From assembly GCA_964270895.1 (NCBI GenBank), contig OZ185446.1: a DNA stretch of 64,000 nt; one strand, given 5' to 3'. The DNA comes from Podarcis filfolensis (taxonomy: Eukaryota). The notes under the pieces were generated by a model. That model saw nothing but the letters and a program-made list of their open reading frames with translations, searched no databases and was not told the origin of the DNA. Below are positions 28,459 through 57,948 of the stretch, one piece after another. Position 1 is the stretch's first letter. The number at the start of each line of letters is the position of its first letter. The position numbers were made by a program, and so were the translations under genes.

Positions 28459-28575
28459 ATGTCCTGGGTGCAAGCTGCAGTCAGCCAGCACAGAGAAGAT
28501 GTATTTGATGAAGATGCAGATGAAATGGACATAGCTCAGAAAGAATGGAAGAGCACCATGGAGAAACGAGTCAAA
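28459..28575 (+). CDS. YAE1: YAE1 first coding exon
   Basis: MSWVQAAVSQHREDVFDEDADEMDIAQKEWKSTMEKRVK|gtaatt, recognisable as the vertebrate YAE1 N-terminus. Confidence 0.93.
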
Positions 28576-29301
28576 GTAATTATATGGTTTGGGTTGGGGA
28601 TTGACCACATCATTGACATAAAAAAATAGCTATTGAGATTCCAAGCTGGATTAGCCTTTAGAAGGTTTAGCAGGTCCACACATACTCCGACACACCTCAG
28701 TCAGCGCAGAGGCAAATAAGGTGTAGGGAGGATGTGTTGGTTGCAGGGAGAAGATAATCCATATTGGGGAAAAGGGAGAGCCTTGGCTCACTGGCCTTCA
28801 CTGCAGAGTTGCTGATCAGAGGATTAAGGGTCAGCTATAGTGTTCTGTTTGGGAGAAACATAGTTCTGGAATTAAGCAGAGAAAGTCATTTTCAGATGAA
28901 ACTAACGGCAATCCACAAGGATAGCTTAACTGTTAATAATGCACTGTCTTGTGTCATGCTATATAATCAAAGATTCAATTTTCCTCTTTCTTTTTTTTTT
29001 TATTTGTTCAGTCCATGCAACTGGAAGGGCTGAAAAAGATCTCACACTTTTGTTATTGTGCCGAATATCCTCTGTCTGCTCCAGAAGCACTTTTTTCATG
29101 ATGAGGTTGACTTTTTAAAGCTACATGATTGGCACACATATTATGTGTAAGCCACACCTCTAGAGCAAACATTTTTATAACTGCAGATGGACCTCATTTC
29201 ATGATGGCTTATTTGAATAAGCCAGGCAGATACTGATGAGTACTGTACTGTTTCTTTTTACATCCTAGTTGTTAATGTGATTTTGATCTCTTTGCTCAAA
29301 G

Positions 29302-29423
29302 GAAGGCTATAGGGAGGGAGCAGAAGCTGGAAAACTGCTGACAGTTCAACAGGGTTTTAATCAGGGGTATAAAGAAGCAGCAAGGAAGATGATCTCATGT
29401 GGCCAACTCAAAGGAACCATAAG
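29302..29423 (+). CDS. YAE1: YAE1 second coding exon (Yae1_N motif)
   Basis: 122 nt; EGYREGAEAGKLLTVQQGFNQGYKEAARKMISCGQLKGTI(S), with the GYxxG...G...QxGFxxGY motif. Confidence 0.95.
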
Positions 29424-30120
29424 GTATGTAGTAAAGCAGCATTTTAAAAAAAGGAATGGAAATTAATTGTACAAGTTGTTAAACTGATAGCAGACCTCCA
29501 CCAGAGAAATATATCTATTAATATAGTGCCCATTTAAATTATGAACACTTAACTTTTTATCCATTCTTTATCGTCACATCCTGCAGGGAACTGGGGTGCA
29601 CAGCCAACACAGCAGGATTTAACACCTTGCTCATCAGCTGATGGGGGTGCGTTAAATCCTACTCAATTCGGTAGGATTTAATGTAAACCTCTTCACGATC
29701 AAGAAGGTTTTGCATTGAAATTCATTCTAACAAAATCCCCTTCCATCTTACCAGCACCTTGCTTCCTGCAGGTTACTTTGAAGTTCTGACAATGGGACTT
29801 GTCACCAGATCACCTGATGCCATTGTGATGTTCGGTGATTGACAGGAGGACAGATAAGGATCTCTCCTGTGAAGCCAAAAAGGCTCCTCACCCCTTAATA
29901 TAGCCACTTGTCCTGATACAATGTCACTCTCTGTTGAACTTGAGCTACTGGAGAACAGAAAAAGATGGCAACAGTAGTCCGTTTGGTTTGTAGCATTTGA
30001 AAGCTACAGCCAACTTGTCCTTCCGTGCTGCTATGAAACCTGGAGGCAGCCTCTTCCATGTAGACCTCCACTGAAGGTGCCTTATAGGATGCACTGTGGA
30101 AGGAGGAAATTTTTAGACTA

Positions 30121-33035: not shown

Positions 33036-33174
33036 CTACTGCTGGTTATGTTCAACTTGTTGGTCTTTGCAGTTTTCCTCACAAGCTCCGTCTTTGCTCA
33101 GAGAAGTTTCCTCAGCTTTTTGTTGGGTGGCTTTCTTGAAAATTGCTCTCATGAGAACTGGAATTGACATACAC
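33036..33174 (-). CDS. MED1-like exon 17 (terminal, short)
   Basis: cttctcttag|G CMSIPVLMRAIFKKATQQKAEETSLSKDGACEENCKDQQVEHNQQ-TAG. Confidence 0.88.
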
Positions 33175-35813
33175 CTAAGAGAAGGGCAAAGTCATCCAAT
33201 ATTTAAGGAATTGCTAATTCACTAAATATAATCTGGCTGCTTCATATGCAGAACTAACTGACTGGTGGATAGAACAAGCTGCATTTGCCACTGTCTCCAA
33301 ACAAGTCAGCGCAGTGCAGAAAGCTTTATAGATTACATAAAATAAATTTCTAAAGTTCCATGCCAGTTCTTCTGTAAGGTGACATAAAGGTAAAGGCACC
33401 CCTGACAGTTAAGTCCAGTTGCGAACGTCTCTGGGGTTGCAGCGCTCATCTCACTTTACTGGCCGAGGGGGCCAACGTTTGTCCGCTTCCACAGACAGTT
33501 TTTCTGGGTTGTGGAAATTATGACTAAGCTGCTTCTGGCCAAACCAGAGCAGCGCACAGAAACACTGTTTACCTTCCTGCCAGAGTGGTACCTATTTATC
33601 TACTTGCACTTTGATGTGCTTTCGAACTGCTAGGTTGGCAGGAGCTGAGACTGACAACGGGAGCTCACCCTGTTGTGGGGCCTCAAACCGCCAACGTTCC
33701 AATCTTATTTTGCATTGCTCACTCAACAGGAGCAGTTTGAATCTTTAAAGTTGCATCTCACCACACTGCTGAAAATCCTACTCATGCTCGATGTTTCACA
33801 AGTATTTCCTATCCCTCCACCACCCATTTCTTTCATCAATTTCCTGATCCTTCTAACTTATAATAATAATTTTATTAGTTGTACCCTGCCCATATGACAG
33901 GGTTGCCACAGCCACTCTGGGCAGCTTCCTCCTATAACAACATTGTTTTACTACAATTGTTGTTGTCAACAACAACAACTATCAGCCTTTTAATTTCCTT
34001 CAACACTTCAAGCTCTTTCCCGTCAGAGCAAGGGAGACCTTGCCCACTCCTGAACCTCTCTGTCTTCTGGCCACCTTTACTCTGCATGCAGAGTTGCTAG
34101 TGTTGCCGCTGGTCCAGCCAAAAGGCTATGGCAGGCAGTGATACTGAGGCCTACCTGAAAGTGGTCCAAAGACCACTGCTGAGACTCAGCCCACTGATGC
34201 TTAGACAGTGGTCTAAGCTGCCCATTACAGAAGCAAAGGAACCTCTAGCTGCGCTAACTATTAAAAGATGGAGGAGATTTTTAGTTCCCTTGAGTTCCAG
34301 AGAATTTCACACTGACATACAGTGCTCAACTAACTCTTCTGACCATCTGGAGCTAGACATTTATGGAGCTTGTAGGTAGTTTATTTTGGTTGCCTGTTTC
34401 TCACGTCTTAAGCCTGATGGAGCTATTCCACTGTGTTGTGCTTTCCTATGAAAGCTTACTCAGAAAGCTTACTCAGTATTATTAAGGTCCAGTTCCTCCA
34501 GCAAACTGTCTAAATGCATGCATCATTTGAGAATATCCTTTTTAAGAAAGCTGAATTGGCCTGTGAAACCCACCATTTTTAATAAATTCTTCATTACAAT
34601 GTTTAAGATGGTATTGTTTCTCCTGCCCCAATGTTTATTCAAATACTGAGAAAAATTTCCCGTTACATGAAATATTTTTCAAATCCTTTAAATCACTTAA
34701 AAGTTTCTAGCTGCTGTACAAAGTTATTAAATTTATAGATAGCCACCCATTGGTTTACAAACCATTCCATTATACATGACACAAAAGGAAAAGGGATTGG
34801 AGGGACAAGAAAACTTGGCCCCTATATATTATAGAAGTGTTACGTACCGCTTCAGGACTCTTGTGAGATAATCATTGCTGCAGATTAATGCTCCATCTTC
34901 AGAATGTGTATGAAGAGTGCACATAACGTCCCTTGAACTCAGAACATCGACCATCACTAAACAGAAGAGGGAAAAAATGCTCTAAAAACAAGTGTGACAT
35001 TATAGTAGAGACAACAGTAAGAATTATTAATAACCACCAAATCTAGTCAATCCTTAAATAGAAATTCTTTCTGGTCACTGCATTGGTTTTATTTATTTTC
35101 CTGAAAGCATGCATGCTTCGTGGGAAGAGGTCACATATTCATGCTCATTCCATGCTGACTGTAAAAATGAGCAATTACAAATCACTACAAGATAAAAATA
35201 TATATGTCACCAGTAATTTCAAAAGAAGTTCATTCACACATCTACCTATGAGTAACAGGCATTTGAACTGGCTCCTGTTATCCCATCACCAGCCCAATCC
35301 AAAGACGTGCACATTGGAAGGATTAACAAAACAGTAAACAGGCTGTTCACCTGTTGCAAGTTTATCCCAAGCCATCTTCAAAGCCGGTGTGGTTCAAGTT
35401 TAATCCACAGATTATGTGATAAAGTGCAACATCTGCTTACTTTTTAATATTCCCAACCATAGTATAAAACTGGGAATCAGACCTAATTTATACCTAGGTA
35501 GTCACATCGCAAAATACGCATTTTCACCCTGGGACCATAGGGTGAAAGATGGACTGTAAATGACATAATGTGCTACTTTTTGTACCAATAGCCCCCAAAC
35601 CAATTTAACAGAGAAAAACACAAACACTAGACACACACACACACACACACACACATACTTATTGTGCAATAGTAGAAAAGAGTTTATATAGATGGCCAAG
35701 TAGTAAATGGGAAGAATTTGCCAGTTTCTTCAATGTGTGCTAAAGTAAGAGCCCCTTTGTGTATAACTATAACCATATTGTACATCACCATGAGACACTT
35801 GTGTAGAAGACTA

Positions 35814-35855
<42 letters not shown>

Positions 35856-38800
35856 TGGCAGCCCTGCTTAGGGAAGCTTTTAATGTTTGACGGACTACTG
35901 TATTTTAATATTTTGTTGGAAGCCACCCAGAGAGGCTGGGGAAACCCAGCCAGATGGATGTGGTATAAAAAATAATAAATTTATTAATTATTATTATTAA
36001 TTATTATTATTATTACCACCTCTTTTCAGACCTTATTTATGAATACGTGGCAATAGTCACAGAAGTGATCCAGCTCCTCCTCTCTAGTTCCTTACCTCTG
36101 TGTGTTCAGACTGCATGGGGAGATGGGCAGGTTAGAGGAAGGCAGGAATTGATGAAGCAAAATTTGGGGTGTTGGTTCTAGCAAGGGACTATTTTTGCTC
36201 TACATGAGGCACAAAGTGTCTTGGGCCAGCACTTTTCCCATTAACATCTGAAAGCAGTCACAAGGGCCAGCTATTTAGGGCTTTGCACAGTGCTGCTCTG
36301 GGAAAAGGGAGGTAGTATTTGCGATGAACTGGTTATTGTGTCCATGTGTGGTATGGACATCCAGTCTGTTCTTAACACTGAAACACACATATACACATTC
36401 ACACGTTCTACCCCGGCCTGAGCCAAATGAGGCTACATGTGTAGTGCAAAATGCAGCGAGTGCATTTCTGCACCACGTTCCCTGCTGACTTTTTGTTTGC
36501 CTGTGTGCACCCAATACACCTTTCCTTTGGAGACATACCACAGGCTAGGTTCTCCTCCAATGGATGCTGGAATGTTACTGAAAAGCTAGTGGCTTTTTGC
36601 TGAAAGACGTCAAAATGAAGCAAGTCTGATGAATCTGGAAGGAAATAACTGTTTAGTGACTGTTTGGGCTAACCCTGTAGCAACAGAGCTAAACGTTTAA
36701 TTTGAACTAGAGATATAAATTAGTGGGTGTAGTCAGAAAACATTTGTATTGATTTCCAAGTATTCTATATCCCTTAACTTAAAACATGACCATTGAAGTA
36801 GGAGTGGGTTGGCTTTTGCTAGACTCAAGGAGTCCTGCTTTGTACACGCTCATGAAGTTTCATGGTACAAACACCAAATGAAATACAGTTGCTGAAAATT
36901 TCCTTTTCAGTTTCACTATCTCCAAAAGAAATAAGTTGTAAGGTGTCAACACTGTTTGGCTGGAATCCAAACAGTTCCAAGCACACCTGAAAGCAGGTCC
37001 ACGTGAATACTTCACTCATTTTTAAATCTCTGCCTGCAGCAACTTTTGCTGAGAAGGGAGGGCCGTAGCTCAGTGGCAGAACATGAGTGCCTTGCCTGAG
37101 AAGGTCCCACGTTCCACCCCCGCCATCTCCAGATCTGACTGTGAGAGAACCTCACCTGACACCCTGGAGAACTGATACCAGGGTAGTGTAGTACTGAGCT
37201 ATGTAAGAAAAAGGGGGGGGGGCTGAAAACAGACTATATAGTTTCAAGATGGGAGTTGCAAACGAAACAAAGAAGAAGGGGGAGAACATTGAAGCCAATG
37301 CACATTCGATTTGCGTGATCTGTTCTACGCTATTCATATTGTTGCACCCCACCTTCAATCTCCAAGGTTTCAGGGATTCCAGGTGCTTAAAGAGGGTTTG
37401 TGATTTCTTTTGGGAATGAGGCACAGCGGAGAATGTGATGTCTTTATGATGTATGGTTTATTTACACGTATATACAAACAGCCTACAATGGAGGGGCTCA
37501 CAACATTAGTTTCTCCCACAGCAGCAGCCTTGGATTCAAACAGAAATCAAATATTTCTCTTTGACCCTGTCTCCAGCTTGCTGCTTTTCTTCCTGGTCAC
37601 TTCACTGCTTCTCTCAACTCTGACTTTATCTGTGAGAGGGGGCCCCACCCATTTGCCATCTTGCCCCTTAATCCCCCTTAACGGCTCATCGCTCAGGTTT
37701 ATCACCTCACGAGGAGGCTAGCCTCGCTATTCCTTGGTTAAATTCTAACACTTGCTAGATCCAAGGATTAGAGGGGTCTGGCACCCAGCTTAACCTCCAC
37801 AGATATGATGGGCTCACAATTTTTCCAGCCACTTTCAATGAATTGGATCACAAAAATGCTGAGAGGGGAGTAGAACCATTATGCTGCCCATCACACCTCC
37901 TTATTTCTAATACCTGAATATCTTGTCACCACCATCCAAGGTGGACCTAACTTTACATGCATCCAACATACAAATACAGGTCCCAATTGATATATTTGAG
38001 CTTCACAGCAAATACTGAAGATAAACTCTTCCCAGAATTCACTACTGGAAACACAGCAGAATCAGAAAGAGGTGTGAGCAAAAGATGTGCAAACATCTTA
38101 CCTTCACACTCAGTTGTCTCAGACACGCAGCTGCTAATGAGGGTGTTATATGCTGCTTGACGTCTGAGAACTTCAATCATATCAGGCACACATTTGGGAT
38201 GGGTGAAAGGGATTTTCTTGACCATTGCTCCAGCCATATCAGATTTTTCTATGCCTTTATCTAGGAAATAGCTGTGTTTTGGGCAGCCTGGAAGAGACTG
38301 ATCATAAACCGTACAAGATTTGTTCATGGATGTAGTAGCAATTGTTTCCTGCATTGATTTTTTTAAAAAGTAGTGAATAGGAAACATGAATAAAAGGAAC
38401 TTCCCTTCAAAAACATACCATATTTATTTGAGTCTAATGTACCATCAAATCTAATGCGCACCTCAATTTTCAGAACCCTGAAACCAAAAAAAGTATTTGC
38501 TGGCGAATGTAAATGTGCCATCGAATCTAATGCGTACCTTAATTTTCACAACAATAAGGGTGAGCATTAGATTTGAGTAAATACGATAGTTGTCTAGAAC
38601 AGTACAAAGAATGTGACACTGGACTTTTAAGCAAACCTTGAAATAAGCTGCTTATATTATAGATGCCTTGACCACCCATTTTTAAACAAGTTATTAAATG
38701 GAGTAGTCTCTGCACTGGATCTGAAGAGTTGCTCAGCTCTCAAGCCCAATGGCACCGTGGGGAAAAACCAACCTGTCTGTGTATACATGGTAGTTTAAAG

Positions 38801-44800: not shown

Positions 44801-47800
44801 AGGTACTATTTCTGGGTTAGCAGAGTCTGTAACCTAAAGTGTCTGTAACCTGATGCATCTGTAACCTGAGGTACCACTGCATTTAAGAAGGTTGAACAAA
44901 TGGGGGGAGCCGCCCCAAGAGATGCTCCAAAGTGCCATTTTGGGACAACTCTGCTAGAAGCAGCTGCACACGGTCAAGTAACTACCAAAGATAAGAAGAG
45001 TTATAGGCAGAAGAAAAAGGCATTGGGGGAAGCAGTGGCCCAATGATCGGACACCCAGGAAATCACTAGCTGGTCTTGGTTTTAACTTTTAAGGCAGTTG
45101 TGCAGAAAGTGCACAGTTTGATCCTTTATCATCATCTAATACATGGATCACACACACACAGCCGCAACAGGACTAGCACCTTATCAGGAAAAATAAGTGA
45201 GATGGGGGGGGGGAGCAGCATTACTCATAAACAAGGAGAAGTGTATGTGCAAAGGGACCAAAACGCAAGGAGGAACTAGTCAGGACCTCTCCTCTATTTT
45301 CACAGCTACCTAGAAAAAGACTCGGGGACAGGAAAGGGGTTGTACACACTCACGTTGGTCTCACCGTCATCTCTAGTCAAAAAGCGGTTTTGGAGCACAA
45401 AGTCCTGTAAGTGGGAACCTCGGGTTACGTACCATCCTCCTTACGAACGCTTTGGGTAACAAGCGCCGCTAACCCGGAAGTAGATGTTCCTGGTTGTGAA
45501 CTTTGCCCCGGGATGTGAGCGGAAGTCGCACGCCGGCAGCGCAGCAGCAGCGGGAGGCGCCATTAGCGAAAGTGCGCCTATGAACAGTTTCAGGTTAAGA
45601 ACAGACCTCTGGAACGAATTAAGTTCGTAACCGGAGGTACCACTGTACTACAAACAACAATGCCTCTGTCATACATGCTACCTACAAAGTCACCGGAAAT
45701 ACCCAAATCATAGTAATACCCAAGGTTTTACTGTTCTTTAGCATTCTTAAATTATGCTTGGCTACCATGATCACACAGATATCTACTTCAGTCTGAAGAA
45801 AGAAAGAAAAATCAGTTACCTCCACTTCTTGGGTTCAGATAGCCAACTTTTCCACATAGTATTTCAGTGACTCTGTCCATACCTGGTGTTCTGTTTTTAA
45901 AGTATATACAGTAATCAGTGAGATCAAGCATGCACTTAAATGCCTTAAAATATTTATTATTATTATTACGGCAACCTTAGGCTGGAGTGCAAACATTTGA
46001 ACTTGCACCTTTCCCACCACTGACACCTACCTGCTCAAAGCAGACAGTGAGCAGAGGTCTTTTTCCAAAGCCAGGAAGGCAGCAAACACCTTGGATTTTG
46101 TTTCACTAGAAAAGAAAGACCTTATTGGAGGAAGGGAGTTTTATATACAATATAATAATTTAAGTAATGTAATTAAGTTGCAACAAACATACCTGCTTCC
46201 TGGAATCTGATAAATATTTAACATGTCTGCTAGCATGTTTCCAAAGGCATCAAAATTTTCCATTCTAAAGAGCAAAATACATGCAACAATTGTCAGTGCT
46301 GATAAGGCAAAGAGAGCCATCTAGCCAATATTTGGGAAAACACCACCACCGAAGTGAATCTGATATTGGCAGCATTGCGCTACCATCAAACAAGACATCT
46401 AAAAAGCAGCTAAATAACTTTGGAAAGTGGCTCAAATTGGTCCTGGATGGAGGGCAGGCAGGGATGGAAGCAACAGTTATCAGAACTATCTATTCATTTT
46501 TACCTCAACCACAGAAAACGATATGGGAGCAGTGGCAAAGGATTTTTATTTTATGAAATTAAAAATTTAAAAATTGTGTGTGTTAAAAATCCACCTAGCG
46601 CATATGTACCTTAGAAGCTGCAAAAGATCTTCACAGGTCTAGAAGATGAAAGAACAGAGGTTATGGTTTTCTAAAGAGGGGCACTATTTTCTTAAAAACA
46701 AAGCAGAAAGGAGAAATGACATAAGCCGAACCTTAGTCAACACGAAACCTTAGCAGACACTACGAGGAATATCCAAGGATGTTTTTCCCAAGATCTATTC
46801 AGGAACAGTCACTTTTGGCTGTAAACCAGAATCTATAAAGGCATATATTTCCTACTCTTCTCCCACCCGTAGTTGGAGTGTGACTGCATCATCTTGAAAG
46901 CCCTTGGGGTCCCTTCCAACTCCACAATTCTATGATTCTATGTTAAAACGCCCCCCCCCCGATGCACCATGTGCTTCACTGCATCCACATATTGCATTTA
47001 CTTCCTTTATTGGACTACCCCTCCAGACTAGGAAAATTCAAATTTAACGGGGGAAATTGTGGGCTAGCAGTTGGATGAGGACATTATGTGAATGAGGAAC
47101 AACCAGCTTCAAACCCACATTAAGTTCCCCATGTGGACGAGCCCATAGTTGCTACCTCATGTCAAGCAGTCTCATCAGATGGGGACAAATTAAGGAGAAA
47201 TGGTCACCCAGCTATAAGGAAATTTAACAGTCCTTGTGCAATTATTTTGCAGTTCAGCTTTTGTGAATGAAACTGCTATTCCCACAAATTTTGCAATTAC
47301 AACTGCAGATGTTTAGTTTGGTTGTAGCAGCAACAGCGTAAGTGTTATAACTAATGTAAAGTTGTCCCTTTGACTTAGATGCAAGTATCTCACTTGCTCC
47401 ACAGGGTTTATTATGAAGCTATAGATATTTCAGAAGAACTAGAAAAGCAGGATTATATTTCATCAGATCAGAACACCCAAAGGAAAACAACTTAAAATTA
47501 CCAGGGGTTTTTTCCCAGGGTGAGCCAACCTGACATCCACCACTTTTCCATCCTTCTCCAGGTGAATCTCAATGTAGAAGGATTTGGATGTTATATAGCA
47601 AACTGCCCCACTGGGGCTCACATAATAATTAAGTCTACAGAGGAAAGAAGGAAGAAGAAAAAATGCATTGCTTATTTAAAAGTTACAGTGTGCAACGGAA
47701 GCCTAGCAGGGCTGGCCCAAGACATTTTGGCACCTGAAGTGAATGACAAAATGGTGTCCCTCTCCCCACCAGGAAGGAAGGGTGAGTGAAGATCTACATC

Positions 47801-49264
47801 AGGAACAAAGTGATGAGGACTAAATATCGACAGAGTGGCTAGAGAAACCCAGCCAGATGAGCCATGTTATGTACTGAAGTTCTCACCCTGGGCCAGCAGG
47901 GGGATACTGTAGATAGTTCAGGTCCACATATGCAAATAAGGGATTGAAAGTGACATTCAGTGATTGGCTAGTTACAGAAAATGGTTACTGCTGCGTTCTA
48001 GTGGAGCTTTATATAAGCAGGCTGGCTGAACCCTTCAGTTCAGTTCTGTTCTGGGTCTGTGAATAAAGAAGAGCTGTTTGAAGAATCGCTGTGTCGTCTG
48101 ATATGTACACCCACAACTTAACAGGTCAGGTATAAATTACTACTACTTCTACTACTACTACTACCATCTGTTGCTGCTGCCCCTGTGGATCCTGCCACCT
48201 GAGGCAGGATGCCTCACTTGCTGCACGGATGGGCTGACCCCGAATGCAAACTTTTTTCTTCATTGTGGTTGATGTATACGGGTTCTACAGAAAGGAGTGT
48301 TTGCACCCAGCTTTCCAAATGGCTGTGTTTCAGTTCCTGAATAAACGTCAGCAGCAGCAGCAGGTCTGTACATCAGTGGAAGACCACATGCTTTGGACTG
48401 AACCCCCCACCCCACCCCAGGTTCAGCTTCCAACATCTCCAGGGCTGGGAAAGGCAGATGCTGCAAGGCAACTCAGAGATCAAAATACTAATAGCTGGAT
48501 TTGGCATAAAGCAACTTCCTACTCCTGCATTTTCTGAAATGCCACTTTGTAGTGGAATTTATCTACGCTTTGTCAAGAGGCTGAGGTGAAGTAGTAATCA
48601 TTTCACAGGCCCAAGTATGGGAAATGTCCCAAAACATTCTGCCCGAGGGGAACTCCTGAACTGCTCATGCTCATCTCTTTCAAGGATATCACAGGAAAAT
48701 GGCAGTAAGCTGCAGCTTAGAGGATGCATTAGCCACTGAATACACCGAATGGCATGTACGCATGTCATGTGAAAATTATACAGCCATAGAAACATACCTA
48801 GCAGTCCCACTGCTGCGGGAAGTGAAGAGAGCGTATTTAGTAGATGCAGAGTATACTTACCCCTTTCGATTTGACAAAAGTGACAGCTTGTTCATTGTTG
48901 CAGCCAAAGGTCCTGCTGCACACATGAAAAAATAGGGAATAAGGTTCCATCACACAGAATCAATGTGTTCAATAAAAGCAGTCAACAGATCCCATACATT
49001 TAAGAGCAAAAGACCAAAGATTCTTGCTTAATTGTGCTATATTGCTCATCGTACCTTTTGTAAAAGGAAGGCATCTAGAACCCAAAAACACATTCGTTGC
49101 ACAAGATGACAAGACAGAAGCTAGACATCATTTCCATCAAACATAACAGAAAATTAGGCAATCCTAGAGTTGATTACCGTGCAAGGTTCTTTGTATTTTC
49201 TCAAGGCAAATAGATATGGGAGACTCTGATGTCTTACTCGAAGTCCAAGAATGTTTGTCCTCAC

Positions 49265-49325
<61 letters not shown>

Positions 49326-52300
49326 TTGTATCATATAATCACATGCACATGCATCATATAATCACATGCAAGTCAGAAAATTGGCTGGTATGTTCAAAGC
49401 AAAATAGGGAATTCAGCACTCTCAGTCAGGCCTCCTATATCTTGACCTTCATTGCCCCCTTTGGGGTGCCAGATCACAATGCTGCAGCAGCAGTGGAAGC
49501 TACAACTGGCAGAAGACATCCCCCCCACCAGGCTTTATAACAGACCAAGTAACCCCACATCCCAGTATCAGCTGGGGGTGGATTGGAAAAAAGATAAAAT
49601 CAAATGGGGAAAATTTGCCTATTCAATTTTTCAATCCGTAAGGGATTGATTAGCTTTGCAATTACAAAGCATTACAACACTGCCATTTTTATTTTCCATT
49701 CTGACCATGGAATTTGCATCACTCTCCCAATACCACACACAAACTGTCCATTTAATTGCATTTAGTTTCATCCTCGATAATCACAATCAATCAGTATTTT
49801 TGGGAAGTTAAGAATCCCCTCCATTATTCCCACCTAGAGCCATCTTGCCAAAGTTCCCCCTTCAGAGTTATCCATCCAAGTTCAAAGTGGAGATGACAGG
49901 GCAGTAAAATAGCAACCTCACATGTTAAACTTTGGCCCGTCAGGCAGAAAATAAGATGGAAGACCTATACACACAATGACTCACTTTCCCTTCTACTTCC
50001 AATTATTCTCCTCAAGAAAGCATAAAAAAAAAGTTTCTCCCACATTACTCCTCCCCAACAGAACTGATTTCATTACAATTCTTACCATGGAGAGACGAAC
50101 CAGTTCCATAGTTTCACTCCACGGCTTCTGTGAGAATTTTAGACGTAGCTTTTCCATTATGTCATTTGCAGACCCAGATTTCGCAGGATCTGGAAGAAGT
50201 TAAGAGTTTAATTAGCTGAGGGTGTGGAAAACCTTTTTCAGTTCAAGGGCCACAGTTCCTTGCTTGAAGCCTCCTGGGGGCCATGGGCCAGAAGCAAAAG
50301 AGGGTGGAGGAAGAAATGGGAGTAGGCTGGTGTCTTCACCTTCCCTAGATCCCTCTTCATCTTCCATGGAAGCCAGAAGCTTTCTCACAGTTGAAGGAAG
50401 CATTCCACTCAGCAAAACCCTCCAACGGGCTGGGCAAAGGGTGTAGTTTGGGAGGCTGTCTGGCTTAGGGAGATTTGAGGGCCAGATGAGAGGCTCAAGG
50501 TCCCATTTGGTCCCTGGGCTCAAGGTTCCCCACCCCTGATATAGCAAAACAGCCAACTATTACATGACTTCAATGAACAGCCCACACTGCAACAATAGTC
50601 ACTTTAAATTAGGACTATTTAGTCCCAGATGGGTGAGATATTTCAGATTAACTGGCTCATGAACTTGGCTACAATATAGGTACTAATATTAATGGACCTG
50701 TGTTTGGCTTAAATCCCACTCTTCCACCTGTTGAATGTCATAATCTGAAACCCACAACTATTTTAAAAGTTCAGTTTTATATCTTAAGTGTCTTTGACAT
50801 TAAATCAAGATACACACCCACACCCCCCCATATATCATTCTATTTTTTTTTAAAAGATTTTTATTAAAGTTTTACAAAAAAGAAAAATAGAAATTCACAG
50901 AATAAAAAACCATAAATTACAGAAAAAAGAAACACACAAAAGAGAAAAAAAAGAAAAAAATACAGAAAGAAAAACACAACTAATTAAGAAAAATTACATT
51001 TGAACAAAGAAAAAATAAAACCATTCCATTTTTCCAATAACCTCAATTTCATATGCTTATGTTCTTGACCTCCTCGCACCTTCCCCTTTTTGTATTCCCA
51101 TTCAAATATTTAATTCAGCAAATTCTTACCCTTTATCAAATGTTTAAACTTTGTGCCATAACATATACTATATCCCTATTTTTCAACCAATTATCAATAC
51201 CTTTTTTGCATAATCTTAATAACTTTTATCACTAATTACCACTTATTGCCCATCCAAGCACATTTTTAACACTCATTAATTTTATAATATTTCTGAAGAT
51301 AGTCTTTGAATTTCTTCCAGTCTTCTTCCACCAACTCTTCTCCCAGGTCTCGGATTCTGTCAGTCATTTCCGCCAATTCCATATAGTCTATCAGCTTCAT
51401 CTGCCATTCTTCCAGGGTGGGTAGCTCTTGTGTCTTCCAATACTTTGCGATGAGAATTCTTGCTGCTGTTGTTGCGTACATAAAGAAATTTCTATCTTTC
51501 TTTGGCACCAGTTGGCCCACCATGCCCAAGAGAAAGGCCTCTGGCTTCTTAAGGAATGTATATCTAAAGATTTTTTTCATTTCGTTATATATCATCTCCC
51601 AGAAAGCCTTAATCTTTGGGCATGTCCACCAAAGGTGAAAGAATGTTCCTTCACTTTCTTTACACTTCCAACATTTATTGTCAGGCAAATGGTAGATTTT
51701 TGCAAGCTTGACTGGTGTCATGTACCACCTGTATATCATTTTCATAATATTCTCTCTTAGGGCATTACATGCCGTAAATTTCATACCTGTGGTCCACAAC
51801 CGTTCCCAGTCAGCAAACATGATGTTATGACCAACATCTTGTGCCCATTTAATCATAGCAGATTTAACTGTTTCATCCTGCGTATTCCATTTTAGCAGCA
51901 AGTTATACATTCTTGAAAGTATTTTAGTTTTGGGTTCTAACAACTCAGTTTCCAATTTTGATTTTTCCACCTGGAAACCTATTTTTTTATCCATGTTATA
52001 GGCTTCTCTTATTTGAAAATAGTGCAGCCAATCTCGCACCTTATCTTTTAATTTCTCAAAACTCTGCAATTTCAATTTATCTCCTTCTTGTTCCAGTATT
52101 TCCCAATATTTCGGCCATTTGGCCTCCATATTGGACTTTTTAAGTGCCTTTGCCTCCATTGGTGACAACCACCTTGGGGTTTTGTTCTCCAGTAAGTCTT
52201 TATATCTTAACCAGACGTTAAACAATGCTTTCCTGACAATATGATTTTTAAATGCTTTATGAGCTTTGACCTTGTCATACCACAGATATGCATGCCACCC

Positions 52301-55300
52301 AAAGACATTATTAAAACCTTCTAAATCCAAAATGTCTGTGTTTTCAAGAAGCAGCCATTCTTTCAGCCAGCAAAATGCGGCCGATTCATAATAGAGTTTC
52401 AGGTCTGGCAGGGCGAAACCACCTCTTTCTCTTACATCGGTTAATATTTTAAATTTTATTCTAGGCTTCTTGCCCTGCCAGACGAATCTAGAAATATCCT
52501 TCTGCCACTTCTTGAAACAATCCATCTTGTCCACAATTTGCAAAGATTGAAACAGAAATAACATCCTTGGCAATACATTCATCTTTATAGCCACAATTCT
52601 TCCCAACAAGGAAAGCTTCAAGTTTGACCATATCTCTAGATCTTTCTTCACTTCTAGCCAACATTTCTCATAGTTATCTTTAAACAAGTTTAGATTCTTA
52701 GCAGTCATATTAACCCCCAAATATTTAACCTTCTTTACTATTGTTAGGCCTGTCTCCTTCTGAAACCTGTCTTTCTCAATCGGTGTTAAATTTTTCTCAA
52801 GAACTTTTGTTTTAGATTTATTCAGCTTAAAACCAGCCATCTGCCCAAATTCTTGGATCACTTCCAAAACTCTTTTCGAACTAGATTCTGGCTCCTGTAA
52901 TGTTAAAACTAAGTCATCTGCAAAAGCTTTCAATTTATATTGCTTAGCTCCGACCTGAATGCCTTTTATCAAACGGTCCCTTCTAATCATATTCAATAAT
53001 ACCTCCAGGACTGTGATAAATAACAATGGGGAAATTGGGCAGCCTTGTCGTGTACCTTTCTCTATCTTAAATCCCTCTGTCACCATATTATTCACAATTA
53101 ATTTAGCCTTTTGTTCTGAGTAAATTGCACTTATACCATTTTCAAACCCTTGACCCACCCCCATCCCCTGAAGATTTTTCTTCATAAAACTCCAAGAAAT
53201 GTTGTCAAAGGCTTTCTCCGCATCTATAAAGATTAAAACTGCTTTGGTGTTTATATTCACTTGCAACTTCTCCAAGATATTGATTATGTTCCTTGTATTG
53301 TCCGACAAGTGTCTACCCGGGAGAAAGCCCGCTTGGTCCTTATGAATCTCTTCCAGTAGTACTTTCTTTAGTCTATTTGCCAAAATGTCCGCAAATATTT
53401 TGTAATCCACATTAAGAAGGGATATGGGGCGGTAGTTCTTAAGTTGCGTCTTTTCAGACTCAGTTTTTGGTATAAGTGTAATATAAGCTTCCTGCCACGA
53501 CTCCGGCGCCTTTTTCCCCTCTAGTATCTCATTGCATACCTCCATTAGTGGTCGAATTAACCAATCTTTCAAAACTCTATAGTATTTGGAGGTTAAGCCG
53601 TCTGGTCCTGGAGATTTGCCCAACTGCATGTTCCGAATGGCACCCTCCACTTCCTGTTCTGTAATTTTGTCACTCAACATTATCCTCTTTTCTTGAGAGA
53701 TTTTTTGTAATCCGTTTTTCCTCAGAAATTGGTCTAATTCGACCTCTTTCTGTGGCCCTTGTGTATAAAGTTGTTTGAAAAATCTCTGGAAGCAGTTTCT
53801 AATTTCCAATGGGTTCTGTATAATCTTTCCATTTACTTCCAAATTTGTTATGGTATTTAGTTTCTGTCTTTTCTTCATCTGCCATGCAAGCAGTTTCCCA
53901 CATTTGTTAGCCGATTCAAAAGACTTTTGTCTCATCTGTTTAATTTTCCATTCCACTTCCTGATTTATCATTCTCATATATTGTACTTGATATAACTTAA
54001 TTTCTCTCAGAATCTCTTGGGATTTTGGTTTCGCTCTTAATCTTTTCTCTCCTTTTATTTTTTCCAAAATTTTATCTTTTTTCTCATTTTGAGTTCTCTT
54101 CTTTATTGCATTCTGTTGAATCAAAAACCCTCGCATGACCGCTTTGCCTGCATCCCAGACTGTTCTTTTTTCCACCGTAGTGTTTAAATTTATCTCAAAA
54201 TAGTCTCTCAATGTTTTTTGGGCCTTCTTAATCACCTCCTGATTTCTAAACAGGGCGTCATTCATCCTCCATCTGAAGGAGCCGATTGGCATTAGTTTCA
54301 TCTCCATCTTTATTGCATTGTGGTCGGAGCAAGTTTTGGGGCAGATTTCCACTTTTCGAATCTTAGGTGCCAGTCCTCTAGTTATCCATATTTGATCAAT
54401 TCTTGTCCATGTCATATTGGCTTCAGAGAAGAATGTTCCCTCTCTTCCAAGGGGGTTCTTAGTTCTCCAAGTGTCAATCAAGTCCATATTGTCAGTCAAT
54501 TCAAAGAAAGTTTTGGGTAGTCTTCCATCTTTAGTTACCACCTGTCTTTGTGACTTATCCATGTTAGTAGATACCACTCCATTCATATCTCCCATCAAAA
54601 TGATGTTATAGTCCATATAGTCCAACAATGTCTCGTGCAATTTCTTAAAAAATTCAGATTTCCCCTCATTTGGTGCATATACTCCTAAAATCAAATATTT
54701 TTCACCTTGTAGTTGAATCTCAATTGCAATAAACCTTCCTTGTTCATCTTTAAAAACAAATTTCGGTGATAGGCTCTCTTTAGCGTATATAACAACTCCT
54801 CTCTTTTTGACTTTGTCCGATGAAATAAATTCTTGACCCAATCTTTTATTAATAAGAACTTTCCTGTGGAGCCTTACCACATGAGTTTCCTGCAAGCAAA
54901 TTAGATCCAATTGGTCCTTTTTCAATATATGAAATACTTTCCTCCTCTTCTCCAGCGAGTTAAAACCGTGAATGTTCCAACTTAATAATTGCAGAGACAT
55001 GGTGTGATTATTTTAATTTCCTCCAGCCGCTCCCAAGAGCTCGTCAAGTTCTTGCGGTGGTATCTTCTTTTTTGATTTGTCAAATTCCAAAGGTGGTGGT
55101 GCTGTGCCAGCTCCTGGTCTCAAGGCTTTTGGCAGATCTGTCGCTTCCTTTTGTAGATCTTCTTCAAAATCTCTCAGAAATTTTTCCTTATCTTCCACTG
55201 ATCTGATTCTGAACTTTTTCCCCTTAAATGTAAAGGACAGTCCCTGGGGGAACTCCCATCTGAAAACAATAGTATTCTTTCTCAACAAGGCCACCAAGTC

Positions 55301-57948
55301 TCCGTAGTTAGTTCTCAAATCCAAAAGGTGTTTCGGAATATCTTTAAAAATCTCCGCTCTGGTCTCATTAATCTCTAGGGTCTTCTGGAAGTGAGCACTC
55401 AATATTTTGTCTCGTTCCTCTTTCGATCGGAGGGTCACCAAACAGTCTCTCACCCTGTTTTTCCTCCCTCCTCTTCCAAGTCTGAAGGCGCTCACTATCT
55501 TGAAATCTTTATCCAGCTCCAAGTTCCAGAATTTCTGAAATTCCTGTGAAAGATAGTCATTCAAATTGTCTCTCTCAAGTTCTGGCACCGCCCTGATCCT
55601 CAGGTTTGTCTGTCTCTCTCTCAATTCAACCATAGACAATAAGGCCTGGTGGTCCCCAATCTGTTTACGTATTGGTTTGATTTCTTCCTCCACAGCCACA
55701 GCTTTTTCTTTTGCCTCCTCGGCTATTTTCCTAGTAGTCGCAGATTCCTCCAACAGTTTTTCTATAGCTTTGGTATTTGAGTTAATACTGGCTGTGTTCC
55801 CTTTAATTTCAGCTGACTGATCTGAGACCTGTTTACTTAGGCCTTCCAATTTTTCGTAGATTTTATTCAACACAGATGTAAATTCCCCTTCTGAGGCCAT
55901 TCCTTTTGGCTCAATTTGCCCTGGGTCTTCCTCCTGAGGTTCAGGGAGGCCAGGCACAGATGCCCTACGTTGCTGGGAGATTGAAGTAGATTGTTGGACT
56001 TTGACCTTGGATCTTGTTGCTCTTTGGTCAGTCATTCCCCTTTATCTTCAGTCAAGGTCAATTCCCACAGGCAAGCCTTGTAGTGGAAAGTCCCCAAAGT
56101 TAACAGTGGAAAATTCCTCCAGTCAAGTATTAACTTCAATAGTCCTCTAGGGGGACACAGTGGCTACCATAAAATTCTCAATAGCCAGACAAATAAGTCT
56201 TTTTGTAGCTTTCCGTGTCCCCTCTTTAATTGAAACTAAGTATTCAGATCAGTAAAACTCAGAAATGTATCTTCTTGCAGAGTTAGATCAAATATTTACT
56301 GTATCCACAGTCAATGCGAGCTCAAATGTAGCAAACCTCGTTAATCTGACAGACCGTTCCCATGAGAGTTCAAATAAAAAGTCTTTTTAAATTCCCAGAA
56401 GATCCCCAGAAGAAATACAGTCACTTTCTCAACTTCCCCTACAGGGGAGTTCTCTCTTTTGGTGCTTAGAGTTAAAGTTGAACGATCCACATTAAAGTAA
56501 TAGCGCAAAAAGGTCTTTGCTTTGATCTTTTACAAAGCGGAAAGGCGGACTTCCTGTTTACACCTTTCCGCTTCGGAGCCCAAATTCAATCCTTTTTGTT
56601 CTCAAATCCAAATTTCTTAAGTCCCCCTACTCACGGGTGTTCTCTTTTAGAGCCGAATTTCACAGGAAAAAGGTCAGCGCTCTCCGGCAACAGCTACGCG
56701 GCTTCGCTCTGTAGACGCAGCAATCGACCCGTAGCACCGCGCCGCTCCCGCTGCACACCGGAACCCCTTTCGGGGCTCCCTCGCAAAAACGGGGGGCGCA
56801 AAAGGTGCCTGCTGGGTCCCACGCTCGCAGGCTCTTTCTGCCTGCGATTTCAGATCGGGTCCCCGCTTCGCCGTAGCGGAACAGACCCACTTTCTACAGG
56901 GCTTCTCCTCCTACTCAGAAGGAGACCGCCATTGCCGTTGGCACCGCCTCCGGAAGTTCCCATATATCATTCTAAGGAAGCAATCCTACTCTTACCTGAG
57001 AGAAAATCCTATTGAGCTCATTGAGAATTGTCTCAGGCACCATTTTAAAACAAATACAATTTAAGTAGCACAAAGCATTTTTTCTAGCCTAAAGGTTTAA
57101 AGTTTCTGTAAGACAATCCATTCAACACCCACTTTTTGGAACTCTCTGCCTGGTAAAATTAGGTACTTTCCACTGTATTGCTTTTGGTGTTTGCAATAAT
57201 TTTTATTTTTGCAAGCCAACTGAGGCATGTAACTTTAACATGTGATTCCATTATGCACAATTGTTTTTAAAATGCTAGTTTCATATTCAGGTAGCTTGTT
57301 TTTAATGTTTAGTCCCATTGGTATTTTATAATTAATATTTGAGAGGTCTTCTGTTGAGTACGTGGTATGTGGTTTTTGTATGTTTGTTAAATACATCAAA
57401 TGGCCATAAAGCCTATATTGGACACCTGATTTCTCCTTTGTGTTATGCTACACATCAACATCATTTGCTTCACTTAGTTTCCCTATACTGCAGGTAACAG
57501 CACAGTCTATGGAGTCCAGAAATGGCAAAGTCTCTGTCCTCAGGCAGGTAACTCTAGACATTTAATTGGCTAAGGTGCAGGAGAAGATTGCTTGCCTGCC
57601 TTGCACATACAGAAACAGACTGGGCTGGTATTTGACTTACTGCAATAGGAGTAATGGGATGGAGTCCTCAGCCTCACCCAAGGGCAGCAGGGTCATTGTG
57701 GGGGTAAAGGACAGGTCTTGGGGCAGACATAACTCTATCTTACCAGAGCCAGGGACCTCAGGGGCAAACAACCAGCAGCTTCTACGGCCTGAGACAGTAG
57801 CCTTGCTCAACCTATAACATCCTCTCTGTGGTGACAATACAGCATAGTGGTGTAATCCAGCCACACCTTCCACATTAGCACCTGCCTGGAAACCCAGATC
57901 CTAAGCGGCTGCAAATACAACAGCCTAATTAGCAACTTACTTACCCAT
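33036..57948 (-). CDS. MED1-like gene: divergent paralogue of Mediator subunit 1, N-terminal structured region only, ~527 aa, 17 coding exons
   Basis: join(57948-57945, 50189-50086, 49259-49178, 48915-48861, 47634-47502, 46638-46610, 46264-46193, 46105-46031, 45890-45820, 44172-44107, 41650-41542, 40798-40668, 40204-40092, 38297-38102, 36634-36539, 34956-34848, 33174-33036) = 1584 nt. All phases are consistent with no internal stop. MED1 hallmarks: KFSQKPWSET, CYITS..FYIE, GYLNPRSGG, ACFFL, RQAAYNTLISSCV, FSVTFQHP, RCMSIPVLMRAI. Exon 1 is the least certain. Confidence 0.9.
33386..33703 (-). mobile_element. Sauria SINE (5' part degraded)
   Basis: aaaggtaaagg tail plus gtttaccttcc...cctatttatctacttgcac...ttcgaactgctaggttggcag body, reverse of the 43694 copy. 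Confidence 0.8.
34848..34956 (-). CDS. MED1-like exon 16
   Basis: 109 nt; (V)MVDVLSSRDVMCTLHTHSEDGALICSNDYLTRVLK(R). Confidence 0.9.
35815..36015. mobile_element. L2 3'-end fragment(s) with (AAT)n and (ATT)n microsatellites at both ends
   Basis: ttgttggaagccacccagagaggctggggaaacccagccagatgg...tataaa is the L2 3' motif also at ~27305-27372, 42448-42510 and 47832-47864. Confidence 0.65.
36539..36634 (-). CDS. MED1-like exon 15
   Basis: 96 nt; (D)SSDLLHFDVFQQKATSFSVTFQHPLEENLAC(V). Confidence 0.92.
37056..37200 (+). mobile_element. tRNA-derived squamate SINE
   Basis: ggccgtagctcagtggcaga A-box head and degenerate B box, followed by non-tRNA body. Confidence 0.55.
38102..38297 (-). CDS. MED1-like exon 14
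   Basis: 196 nt; SLPGCPKHSYFLDKGIEKSDMAGAMVKKIPFTHPKCVPDMIEVLRRQAAYNTLISSCVSETTECE. Confidence 0.93.
38418..38586. mobile_element. Tc2-like (CCGTA-terminus) MITE, degenerate
   Basis: TA-ccatatttatttgagtctaatg...cattagatttgagtaaatacga-TA imperfect TIRs. Confidence 0.6.
40092..40204 (-). CDS. MED1-like exon 13
   Basis: 113 nt; (G)LPVARVKPGPLHELIVQFALSENHPHGLIASTSSFIV. Confidence 0.85.
40668..40798 (-). CDS. MED1-like exon 12 (NAGNAG acceptor, GC donor)
   Basis: 131 nt; (G)SPRFLPLKEVISAPLSACFFLMFYQNCPFPLSSTSIHKLQELT(G)|GCATGT. Confidence 0.85.
40882..41140. mobile_element. Two adjacent degenerate hAT-like MITE fragments
   Basis: Repeated tgttgttggac(t/ta)caactccca(t/c)ca motif, related to 23097-23292. 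Confidence 0.5.
41542..41650 (-). CDS. MED1-like exon 11
   Basis: 109 nt; (G)LKIDGRKVLVIIGGADAVHRLPLAPSLVNSPTGGD(G). Confidence 0.87.
42448..43065 (-). mobile_element. 5'-truncated L2-clade LINE fragment
   Basis: ORF VHALVISCLDYCNVLYVGLPLK...LIQNAAARLVT...LHWLPV...FKVLVLIFKAL plus L2 3' end. Confidence 0.88.
43694..44051 (+). mobile_element. Full-length, young Sauria SINE
   Basis: tRNA head (tggcgctgtgg A box, ggttcgaatccc B box), CpG-rich body, acctttacct tail; 13-bp TSD TAAGCCACTTTGA at 43681-43693 and 44052-44064. Confidence 0.93.
44107..44172 (-). CDS. MED1-like exon 10
   Basis: 66 nt; (G)SPMNLEFYLSPYQILEEQLTP(G)|gtgagt. Confidence 0.88.
44649..44879. mobile_element. pogo/Tigger-like MITE
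   Basis: CAGTGGTACCTC...GAGGTACCACTG TIRs. Confidence 0.8.
45410..45645. mobile_element. pogo/Tigger-like MITE
   Basis: agtgggaacctcgggttacg...cgtaaccggaggtaccactg-TA. Confidence 0.75.
45820..45890 (-). CDS. MED1-like exon 9
   Basis: 71 nt; (R)TPGMDRVTEILCGKVGYLNPRSG(G); the phase-compatible acceptor has a weak pyrimidine tract. Confidence 0.85.
46031..46105 (-). CDS. MED1-like exon 8
   Basis: 75 nt; (S)ETKSKVFAAFLALEKDLCSLSALS(R). Confidence 0.9.
46193..46264 (-). CDS. MED1-like exon 7
   Basis: 72 nt; (R)MENFDAFGNMLADMLNIYQIPGS(S). Confidence 0.9.
46610..46638 (-). CDS. MED1-like exon 6 (29-nt microexon)
   Basis: ttcatcttctag|TCEDLLQLL(R)|gtacat; bridges phase 0 to phase 2 exactly. Confidence 0.85.
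46880..46941 (+). mobile_element. CR1 LINE 3' end
   Basis: ggtcccttccaactcc...attctatgattctatg octamer tail. Confidence 0.7.
47502..47634 (-). CDS. MED1-like exon 5
   Basis: 133 nt; (G)LNYYVSPSGAVCYITSKSFYIEIHLEKDGKVVDVRLAHPGKKPL. Confidence 0.93.
47865..48123 (+). mobile_element. Solo LTR (259 bp) nested in an L2 3' tail
   Basis: TGTTA...TAACA termini, TATA-like tttatataag (~48008), AATAAA (48062-48067); diverged 5-bp flanks agcca/ggtca. Confidence 0.65.
48861..48915 (-). CDS. MED1-like exon 4
   Basis: 55 nt; (A)GPLAATMNKLSLLSNRK(G)|gtaagt. Confidence 0.88.
49178..49259 (-). CDS. MED1-like exon 3 (GAG acceptor)
   Basis: 82 nt; DKHSWTSSKTSESPISICLEKIQRTLH(A)|gtaatc; acceptor (TC)n-tttctcggtGAG|. 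Confidence 0.8.
49271..49320. repeat. (AG)25 microsatellite, the polypyrimidine tract of MED1-like exon 3
   Basis: Perfect dinucleotide run 11 nt upstream of the acceptor on the minus strand. Confidence 0.95.
50086..50189 (-). CDS. MED1-like exon 2
   Basis: 104 nt; (D)PAKSGSANDIMEKLRLKFSQKPWSETMELVRLSM|gtaag. Confidence 0.92.
50218..50538. mobile_element. Degenerate hAT-like MITE
   Basis: Imperfect TIRs gagggtgtggaaaacctt / aaggttccccacccctg. Confidence 0.55.
51266..55000 (-). CDS. L1 ORF2p: APE endonuclease, reverse transcriptase, Cys-rich domain (1244 aa)
   Basis: SWNIHG, LQETH, GDMNG, RIDQIW, SDHN; YRPISLLNVDYKI, QGCPISPLLF, FADD; CWKC...HLWWTC. Confidence 0.97.
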   Translation of the reverse strand: MSLQLLSWNIHGFNSLEKRRKVFHILKKDQLDLICLQETHVVRLHRKVLINKRLGQEFISSDKVKKRGVVIYAKESLSPKFVFKDEQGRFIAIEIQLQGEKYLILGVYAPNEGKSEFFKKLHETLLDYMDYNIILMGDMNGVVSTNMDKSQRQVVTKDGRLPKTFFELTDNMDLIDTWRTKNPLGREGTFFSEANMTWTRIDQIWITRGLAPKIRKVEICPKTCSDHNAIKMEMKLMPIGSFRWRMNDALFRNQEVIKKAQKTLRDYFEINLNTTVEKRTVWDAGKAVMRGFLIQQNAIKKRTQNEKKDKILEKIKGEKRLRAKPKSQEILREIKLYQVQYMRMINQEVEWKIKQMRQKSFESANKCGKLLAWQMKKRQKLNTITNLEVNGKIIQNPLEIRNCFQRFFKQLYTQGPQKEVELDQFLRKNGLQKISQEKRIMLSDKITEQEVEGAIRNMQLGKSPGPDGLTSKYYRVLKDWLIRPLMEVCNEILEGKKAPESWQEAYITLIPKTESEKTQLKNYRPISLLNVDYKIFADILANRLKKVLLEEIHKDQAGFLPGRHLSDNTRNIINILEKLQVNINTKAVLIFIDAEKAFDNISWSFMKKNLQGMGVGQGFENGISAIYSEQKAKLIVNNMVTEGFKIEKGTRQGCPISPLLFITVLEVLLNMIRRDRLIKGIQVGAKQYKLKAFADDLVLTLQEPESSSKRVLEVIQEFGQMAGFKLNKSKTKVLEKNLTPIEKDRFQKETGLTIVKKVKYLGVNMTAKNLNLFKDNYEKCWLEVKKDLEIWSNLKLSLLGRIVAIKMNVLPRMLFLFQSLQIVDKMDCFKKWQKDISRFVWQGKKPRIKFKILTDVRERGGFALPDLKLYYESAAFCWLKEWLLLENTDILDLEGFNNVFGWHAYLWYDKVKAHKAFKNHIVRKALFNVWLRYKDLLENKTPRWLSPMEAKALKKSNMEAKWPKYWEILEQEGDKLKLQSFEKLKDKVRDWLHYFQIREAYNMDKKIGFQVEKSKLETELLEPKTKILSRMYNLLLKWNTQDETVKSAMIKWAQDVGHNIMFADWERLWTTGMKFTACNALRENIMKMIYRWYMTPVKLAKIYHLPDNKCWKCKESEGTFFHLWWTCPKIKAFWEMIYNEMKKIFRYTFLKKPEAFLLGMVGQLVPKKDRNFFMYATTAARILIAKYWKTQELPTLEEWQMKLIDYMELAEMTDRIRDLGEELVEEDWKKFKDYLQKYYKINEC
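55013..56035 (-). CDS. L1 ORF1p: coiled coil, RRM, CTD (340 aa)
   Basis: Heptad-rich N-terminal half, then RQTNLRIRAVPE, FRLGR, IFKDI...RTNY, FRWEFPQGLSF motifs, immediately upstream of ORF2. Confidence 0.93.
   Translation of the reverse strand: MTDQRATRSKVKVQQSTSISQQRRASVPGLPEPQEEDPGQIEPKGMASEGEFTSVLNKIYEKLEGLSKQVSDQSAEIKGNTASINSNTKAIEKLLEESATTRKIAEEAKEKAVAVEEEIKPIRKQIGDHQALLSMVELRERQTNLRIRAVPELERDNLNDYLSQEFQKFWNLELDKDFKIVSAFRLGRGGRKNRVRDCLVTLRSKEERDKILSAHFQKTLEINETRAEIFKDIPKHLLDLRTNYGDLVALLRKNTIVFRWEFPQGLSFTFKGKKFRIRSVEDKEKFLRDFEEDLQKEATDLPKALRPGAGTAPPPLEFDKSKKKIPPQELDELLGAAGGN
57945..57948 (-). CDS. MED1-like exon 1, coding part (ATG G); the exon may extend to an acceptor at 58044
   Basis: gaaATGG|GTAAGT: good Kozak context, perfect donor, phase 1 matching exon 2, in-frame TAA shortly upstream. 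Confidence 0.6.

Follow-up and report, generated by a model that had tools for sequence, protein, structure and literature searches.

The 64-kb stretch of Podarcis filfolensis DNA analysed here (the window) contains an intact and spliced second copy of MED1, the splicing being seen in sequencing runs that are presumed to be RNA. With a probability of about 0.8, this MED1-like gene is the lizard orthologue of a second, short MED1 which occurs throughout the gnathostomes and which goes back to a duplication of the MED1 locus of 1R/2R age. A reading made from the sequence alone had already taken the gene for an ohnologue, and this view, which we hold with the same confidence, was supported by the tree, by the AU test, by the synteny and by the introns.

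The MED1-like gene in the Podarcis filfolensis window

Three genes of interest could be recognised in the window, the sequence of which contains no runs of N: RALA on the minus strand, YAE1 on the plus strand and the MED1-like gene on the minus strand (Table 1). They follow each other in this order, and the earlier placement of the MED1-like gene next to YAE1 and RALA was confirmed. The kinship with MED1 was seen in a piece at 37956-38387 (-), which matched residues 365-448 of human MED1 (7emf_A, E = 1.4e-9), and in exon pieces matching the Pfam Med1 profile (PF10744) with E = 1.7e-10 and 1.4e-7, both above the 25-bit cut-off. The full Med1 profile was spanned by two orthologues of the short form (E = 1e-46 and 3e-57).

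Exons 2-17 were placed one by one using the exon lengths and phases of the gecko orthologue as a guide; exons were accepted only with an open frame between an AG acceptor and a GT or GC donor. The exon lengths were either equal to those of the gecko gene or differed from them by multiples of 3. An AG acceptor could be found at every exon, and exons 2-16 have GT donors with the exception of one GC. From 50189 to 33036 on the minus strand the exons contain no internal stops, and the reading frame is closed by a stop codon at 33038-33036. A candidate for the coding start lies at 57948, in a putative first exon of which the phase 1 is also the phase of intron 1 in the gecko, frog and eel orthologues. 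An in-frame Met within exon 2 is an alternative start.

Table 1. Positions of the exons of the MED1-like gene and of the neighbouring features in the window
Feature	Position	Strand	Evidence and remarks
MED1-like, candidate exon 1 (coding start)	57945..57948	-	ATG 57948-57946 + G, GTAAGT donor, phase 1
MED1-like, exon 2, 104 nt	50086..50189	-	AG/GT sites; 22/34 residues identical to the Hemicordylus short form
MED1-like, exon 3, 82 nt	49178..49259	-	Splice sites and gecko guide
MED1-like, exon 4, 55 nt	48861..48915	-	Acceptor 3 nt further in equally possible
MED1-like, exon 5, 133 nt	47502..47634	-	Pfam Med1 on piece 47466-47675; conserved in Lacerta agilis
MED1-like, exon 6, 29 nt micro-exon	46610..46638	-	Identical in L. 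agilis
MED1-like, exon 7, 72 nt	46193..46264	-	Splice sites, gecko guide, L. agilis
MED1-like, exon 8, 75 nt	46031..46105	-	Splice sites, gecko guide, L. agilis
MED1-like, exon 9, 71 nt	45820..45890	-	Splice sites, gecko guide, L. agilis
MED1-like, exon 10, 66 nt	44107..44172	-	Splice sites, gecko guide, L. agilis
MED1-like, exon 11, 109 nt	41542..41650	-	Splice sites, gecko guide, L. agilis
MED1-like, exon 12, 131 nt	40668..40798	-	GC donor, kept in L. agilis too
MED1-like, exon 13, 113 nt	40092..40204	-	Splice sites, gecko guide, L. agilis
MED1-like, exon 14, 196 nt	38102..38297	-	Matches human MED1 residues ~365-430; donor exact in contig joint 36634/38102
MED1-like, exon 15, 96 nt	36539..36634	-	Both splice junctions present in a run X9 contig
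MED1-like, exon 16, 109 nt	34848..34956	-	Joint 34956/36539 present in run X9
MED1-like, last exon (17), 45 codons + stop	33036..33174	-	Stop same as in Podarcis lilfordi
YAE1	28459..31145	+	ATG 28459; last coding ORF 30750-31145; convergent with the MED1-like gene
RALA	6469..12884	-	Pieces 12753-12884 (start Met), 11311-11541, 6469-6717; excludes the last coding exon further left
CpG island, GC 0.63	21500..23300	.	Upstream of RALA (- strand)
L1-type retrotransposon, full-length	51266..56035	-	ORF1 340 aa 56035-55013; ORF2 1244 aa 55000-51266; both open

The YAE1 gene was identified by a piece at 29287-29463 which matched Pfam Yae1_N (E = 2e-11). The three pieces of RALA code for a Ral GTPase; the middle one (11311-11541) matched Pfam Ras, and the piece at 6469-6717 gave 122 bits against Ral-A and 87 against Ral-B among the PDB entries. 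Judged from its position, the CpG island is probably the promoter and 5' exon of RALA. The L1 element is oriented like the MED1-like gene, its ORF2 carries endonuclease and reverse-transcriptase motifs and, if exon 1 is at 57948, the element sits in intron 1 of this gene. Further traces of mobile elements were a Tc1/mariner-like transposase ORF of 294 aa in a RALA intron (8003-8887, +) and C-terminal fragments of non-LTR reverse transcriptases at 4976-6202 (-) and 42575-43009 (-), one of which lies in a MED1-like intron. Very high contig depth was observed in all four runs at 33246-34041 (intron 16) and 35833-36031 (intron 15); these segments look like high-copy repeats, and their loose ends resemble a tRNA-derived SINE.

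The conservation of the MED1-like gene was examined by comparing exons 5-17 with those of Lacerta agilis. All splice sites are kept in this species, including the GC donor of exon 12, and there are no stops. The exons of P. filfolensis and L. agilis differ by 3.7% and the introns by about 9%; the dN/dS value was 0.28 at a dS of 0.089. Judged from these substitution rates, the MED1-like gene is under purifying selection. The public lacertid gene models are fragments of 168-239 aa (Lacerta agilis, Podarcis lilfordi), and the L. agilis locus is split into two models. Since exons 5-17 are all intact and conserved in L. agilis, these models look under-merged, and the fragmentary lacertid models of the MED1-like gene should be merged in genome annotation.

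Transcription was followed in contigs from public runs, presumed to be RNA, of the same or a closely related organism. In one contig of run X9 the joints 38102/36634 and 36539/34956 were seen, which are exactly the predicted junctions of exons 14, 15 and 16, and the CT..AC ends at these joints correspond to GT..AG on the minus strand. This was the one spliced contig for the MED1-like gene; some other contigs were unspliced. Upstream of the exon 14 acceptor the spliced contig continues unspliced for at least 100 nt (38298-38400), and this read-through may reflect either intron retention or an alternative first exon within the gene. In another contig of run X9 the match stops at the exon 17 acceptor (33175) and continues on the other side to 32450. 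Since this contig extends to 32450, the 3' UTR of the MED1-like gene is at least 580 nt long.

Distribution, intron structure and age of the short form

An exhaustive protein search with exon 14 as the query yielded 171 cluster representatives. Proteins of the short type, mostly about 510-690 aa long, could be detected across many gnathostome lineages, and in every non-mammalian one sampled: in squamates (lacertids, with Podarcis lilfordi and, in the same cluster, Lacerta agilis; a cordylid; geckos), in many turtles and well over a hundred birds, in frogs, salamanders, a caecilian and the coelacanth, as well as in bichir, sturgeon, gar, teleosts and the elephant shark. The proposal that the gene had been retained in squamates was far too narrow, since a shark, fishes, amphibians, turtles and birds have the short gene too. 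Both paralogues were present in one genome in Nanorana, Anguilla, Terrapene and Labeo. The mammalian matches (pig, hamster, donkey, primates) were all canonical, with 82-85% identity to the canonical MED1 of Anolis, and no mammalian protein of the short type was among the matches listed. This absence from the listed short-type matches suggests, but does not prove, that the short form was lost in mammals. One protein which had been taken for a vertebrate MED1 by its length was actually that of the annelid Capitella.

In the exon-by-exon comparison the window gene was 62% identical to the short form of Hemicordylus, 51% to that of the gecko, 50% to that of the turtle and 39% to that of the shark; the values were 37% for the canonical MED1 of Anolis or loach and 35% for lamprey. 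With the 'MED1-like' protein of Podarcis lilfordi the identity was 92-98% in exons 13-15 and 17, and 78% in exon 16. The short gene bears the NCBI name 'mediator of RNA polymerase II transcription subunit 1-like' in hundreds of species. A 'small form' of Med1 has been described in frogs and fish (Bourbon 2008, PMC2475620), and the window gene belongs with this form and with the NCBI 'MED1-like' models, being in the same clade as the frog, fish, bird and turtle proteins. The paper reports two Med1 forms in frogs, fish and worms and does not deal with origin, synteny or distribution. In our literature search, which besides the paper of Bourbon led to a C. elegans table, no paper was found on the origin, synteny, mammalian loss or function of the short form; a 2026 paper on fish-specific Mediator paralogues covers med13b and med31l, and Med1 is absent from it.

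The exon junctions of the canonical loach MED1 and of the short genes of gecko, frog, eel and elephant shark were projected onto one protein alignment. The loach gene has 15 coding introns, all of which match introns of the short form in alignment column and in phase, and the short-form genes possess one extra intron (alignment column 388, phase 1). The last common intron is of phase 2 and is followed by the final exon, which has 1,220 codons in loach MED1. Since 15/15 canonical introns coincide in column and phase, the MED1-like gene is a DNA-level duplicate and not a retrocopy, and the sequence-only reading, according to which all MED1 introns are kept and no retrocopy is involved, was correct in this respect.

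A maximum likelihood tree was computed from 39 N-terminal domains under LG+C20+F+G4 and was rooted with amphioxus, the acorn worm Ptychodera, a scorpion, a nemertean and the annelid Capitella. The canonical MED1 sequences in this tree come from groups other than the chondrichthyans, and the window's gene was represented by its Podarcis and Hemicordylus orthologues, the window exons being compared one by one as given above. The support was 100/100 for the vertebrates, 100/99 for canonical MED1 and 100/99 for the short clade. The three cyclostome genes stand together outside the canonical and short forms (85/72), and the invertebrate genes are outside too. The branching order within the short clade agrees with that of the species, with the shark first, then coelacanth, ray-fins (including teleosts) and tetrapods, and the Podarcis and Hemicordylus short forms fall among the squamates. 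When the squamate short and squamate canonical forms were forced together, the likelihood dropped by 388 lnL units and the arrangement was rejected (AU p = 5e-12). The tree puts the short clade as the sister group of gnathostome canonical MED1 (97/95); thus the gene is ancient, as had been suggested, and not a squamate-specific duplicate nested in amniote MED1. Because of the rooted tree, the duplication has to be older than the split of sharks and bony vertebrates and younger than the split of amphioxus.

Within this interval, the duplication could also predate the separation of cyclostomes and gnathostomes (1R or earlier). In that case the orthologue of the short form would be a long lamprey/hagfish gene and the truncation would have taken place in jawed vertebrates only; the gene would still be an ohnologue, but of a different round. 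Such an early date would agree with the presence of two long MED1 genes in lampreys (1590 and 1810 aa), and a tree in which the short clade was united with the lamprey-1810/hagfish pair, at a cost of 13.9 lnL units, was not clearly rejected (AU p = 0.053). However, the best tree unites the canonical and short forms (97/95) and leaves the cyclostome genes outside (85/72), and we consider the pre-cyclostome date unlikely. The branches of the short clade are 3-5 times longer than the canonical ones, and a long-branch pull on its placement is possible. Each of the two lamprey genes has two LxxLL motifs, and the hagfish gene groups with the 1810-aa type.

Synteny of the short gene and the 7p/17q paralogon

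In six species, namely Callorhinchus, Polypterus, Spea, Heteronotia, Taeniopygia and Lacerta agilis, a Yae1_N gene was found on the opposite strand 2-6 kb past the 3' end of the short gene. This tail-to-tail arrangement is that of the window. In the carp Labeo rohita a Ras-family gene of 206 aa (RALA-type) stands head-to-head with the short gene, and one of its exons is protein-identical to a RALA exon of the window. Altogether, YAE1 and/or RALA could be observed beside the short gene in seven species besides P. filfolensis. An ohnologue should have homologues at the YAE1/RALA locus outside lizards, and these were found in the elephant shark, bichir, frog, zebra finch and carp.

In eel and Labeo an F-box/LRR gene on the same strand takes the place of YAE1 downstream of the short gene; the F-box exon of the eel gene was not found in the available part, which is its 5' end. 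This neighbourhood resembles that of human MED1, which adjoins FBXL20 in 17q12, and if the fish gene is an FBXL2/FBXL20-type paralogue, it would make a second duplicated pair in the block. The canonical MED1 of the loach is followed by RPL19. CDK13 was absent from the window, as were all other paralogon markers except RALA and YAE1, and none was found within 10 kb of the short gene in any locus examined. In all these loci the neighbours within 10 kb were only YAE1, RALA or the F-box gene, and no second paralogous pair was seen beside the short gene.

Many old duplicate pairs, such as HOXA/HOXB, EGFR/ERBB2, CDK13/CDK12 and IKZF1/IKZF3, are common to human 7p and 17q. A 7p14.2-p11.2 deletion takes in human RALA, CDK13, POU6F2 and IKZF1 (PMC8623992), and human MED1, CDK12, STARD3, FBXL20 and IKZF3 lie in one 0.5 Mb amplification peak of 17q12 (PMC9177111). 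The link of the lizard gene to this paralogon is indirect, as it rests on the human map and on the general knowledge of 7p/17q paralogy. According to the model suggested here, the whole ancestral MED1 locus would have been duplicated at the DNA level after the amphioxus split and before the split of sharks and bony vertebrates, a date that falls in the time window of the vertebrate genome duplications. The short copy would have been kept since then in the RALA-YAE1 neighbourhood, the presumed counterpart of human 7p14, and canonical MED1 in the counterpart of human 17q12. Because of the date and of these two counterpart neighbourhoods, an ohnologue origin is the best reading.

The tree dates the split only, and a genome duplication could not be distinguished in it from a regional duplication of equal age. 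The MED1 locus might therefore have been duplicated regionally (segmentally) in the stem of the jawed vertebrates, the copy landing beside RALA/YAE1 by chance, and the fact that the short gene has YAE1, RALA and the F-box gene as its close neighbours and no second paralogous pair next to it would be in line with such an event. Against this, the split date falls within the 1R/2R interval, the MED1-like and MED1 loci belong to human regions with many old paralogue pairs, and it would take a coincidence for a single gene to be inserted in precisely the matching paralogon; a regional duplication thus appears quite improbable. A recent lizard-specific duplicate, a retrocopy or a decaying pseudogene, which the partial NCBI models of lacertids (168-239 aa, with the L. 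agilis locus split in two) and the 5-6 kb L1 in the putative first intron might bring to mind, is ruled out by the introns at MED1 positions, the rejection of a squamate-only origin (AU p = 5e-12), the open frame and intact splice sites of 16/16 exons and the dN/dS of 0.28, besides the spliced contig and the orthologues from shark to birds.

The short last exon and its possible consequences for Mediator

In canonical MED1 the NR boxes and the disordered tail are encoded by the last exon, which comprises about 1,000-1,200 codons. The corresponding exon of the short forms has 45 codons in the window, 48 in the shark, 89 in the zebra finch, 134 in the eel, 242 in Spea and 497 in the gecko. The 497-codon exon of the gecko Heteronotia contains internal tandem repeats (offset self-match, 90% identity) and no LxxLL, and is a lineage-specific re-extension of the tail. 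After the core, LxxLL was found in none of the short forms (0/13), and there was none in the 45 codons of the window's last exon. Two LxxLL are present right after the core in the loach MED1, in both lamprey genes and in amphioxus. This distribution of LxxLL indicates that the NR boxes are older than the vertebrates and disappeared from the short lineage before the sharks branched off.

The fold was tested on the Hemicordylus orthologue, which stood in for the window's own protein. Its AlphaFold model had a pLDDT of 76, with a core above 90 and the last ~100 residues disordered. The model matched human MED1 in Mediator with TM values of 0.81-0.86 and 36% identity (7emf_A, TM 0.82; 8gxq_a, TM 0.86; also 7ena_a), and the best structural match was 7EMF, the title of which names a 'deletion of MED1-IDR'. 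This engineered MED1 without the disordered region has a close natural counterpart in the short form, with the difference that the MED1 of 7EMF is a laboratory construct, while the short form is encoded by a gene of its own, on which selection has acted for several hundred million years.

Canonical MED1 (TRAP220/DRIP205), a subunit of the Mediator middle module, and the short form have in common the Med1 domain, the fold, 15/15 introns and a core identity of ~37%. They differ in the last exon (45 codons in the window gene against about 1,200), in the post-core LxxLL and the long disordered tail, both missing from the short form, in the rate of evolution, which is 3-5 times faster in the short form, and in the locus, as the short form lies beside YAE1/RALA and canonical MED1 in the MED1/CDK12/FBXL20 region. 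Paralogue pairs of Mediator subunits that go back to the vertebrate genome duplications are also formed by MED12/MED12L, MED13/MED13L and CDK8/CDK19 (PMC2475620, PMC13069492), and the MED1-like gene is, like these, an old vertebrate duplicate of a Mediator subunit which was probably retained as an alternative subunit. The members of those three pairs are kept in mammals and are similar in size, whereas MED1-like is cut down to the docking domain and was seen in no mammal among the matches listed.

On the ohnologue reading, the giant last exon would have been almost wholly lost from the short copy at an early stage. The copy now codes for the folded N-terminal Med1 domain only, with a length of about 510-620 aa in most species, and the two LxxLL boxes and the disordered tail are missing. 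As its fold suggests, such a protein may occupy the place of MED1 in the Mediator middle module, and a Mediator with the short form would have neither NR-box recruitment nor the condensate-promoting tail. The short form could then either replace MED1 in certain tissues or compete with it. We suggest tentatively that most non-mammalian jawed vertebrates might run two Mediators, one with canonical MED1 and one with a natural tail-less MED1 at the same site, and that mammals lost the second. It is possible, to the same somewhat doubtful degree, that the tail-less Mediator would not be recruited by nuclear receptors through LxxLL and would be poor at forming MED1-type condensates. If the two-Mediator reading is true, the short gene is a natural experiment on the purpose of the disordered tail of MED1.

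Nuclear receptors act on Mediator through its MED1 subunit, the disordered tail of which is in standard use as a model of transcriptional condensates. To our knowledge, nearly all the work on the MED1 tail and on the receptors is in mammals. Mammals, in which most MED1 work is done, appear to be without the short paralogue, and chicken, Xenopus-type frogs and zebrafish-type fishes possess an ancient, constrained copy made up of the docking domain only. When MED1 is knocked out or its tail deleted in chicken, frog and fish, the effects may therefore be buffered or confounded by the short form, and the function of a tail-less MED1 is open to study in a natural protein. With the short gene the 7p/17q paralogon would gain one more ohnologue pair, one member of which, as the listed matches suggest, was lost specifically in mammals, and the gene would be a further case of an old ohnologue that was kept outside mammals.
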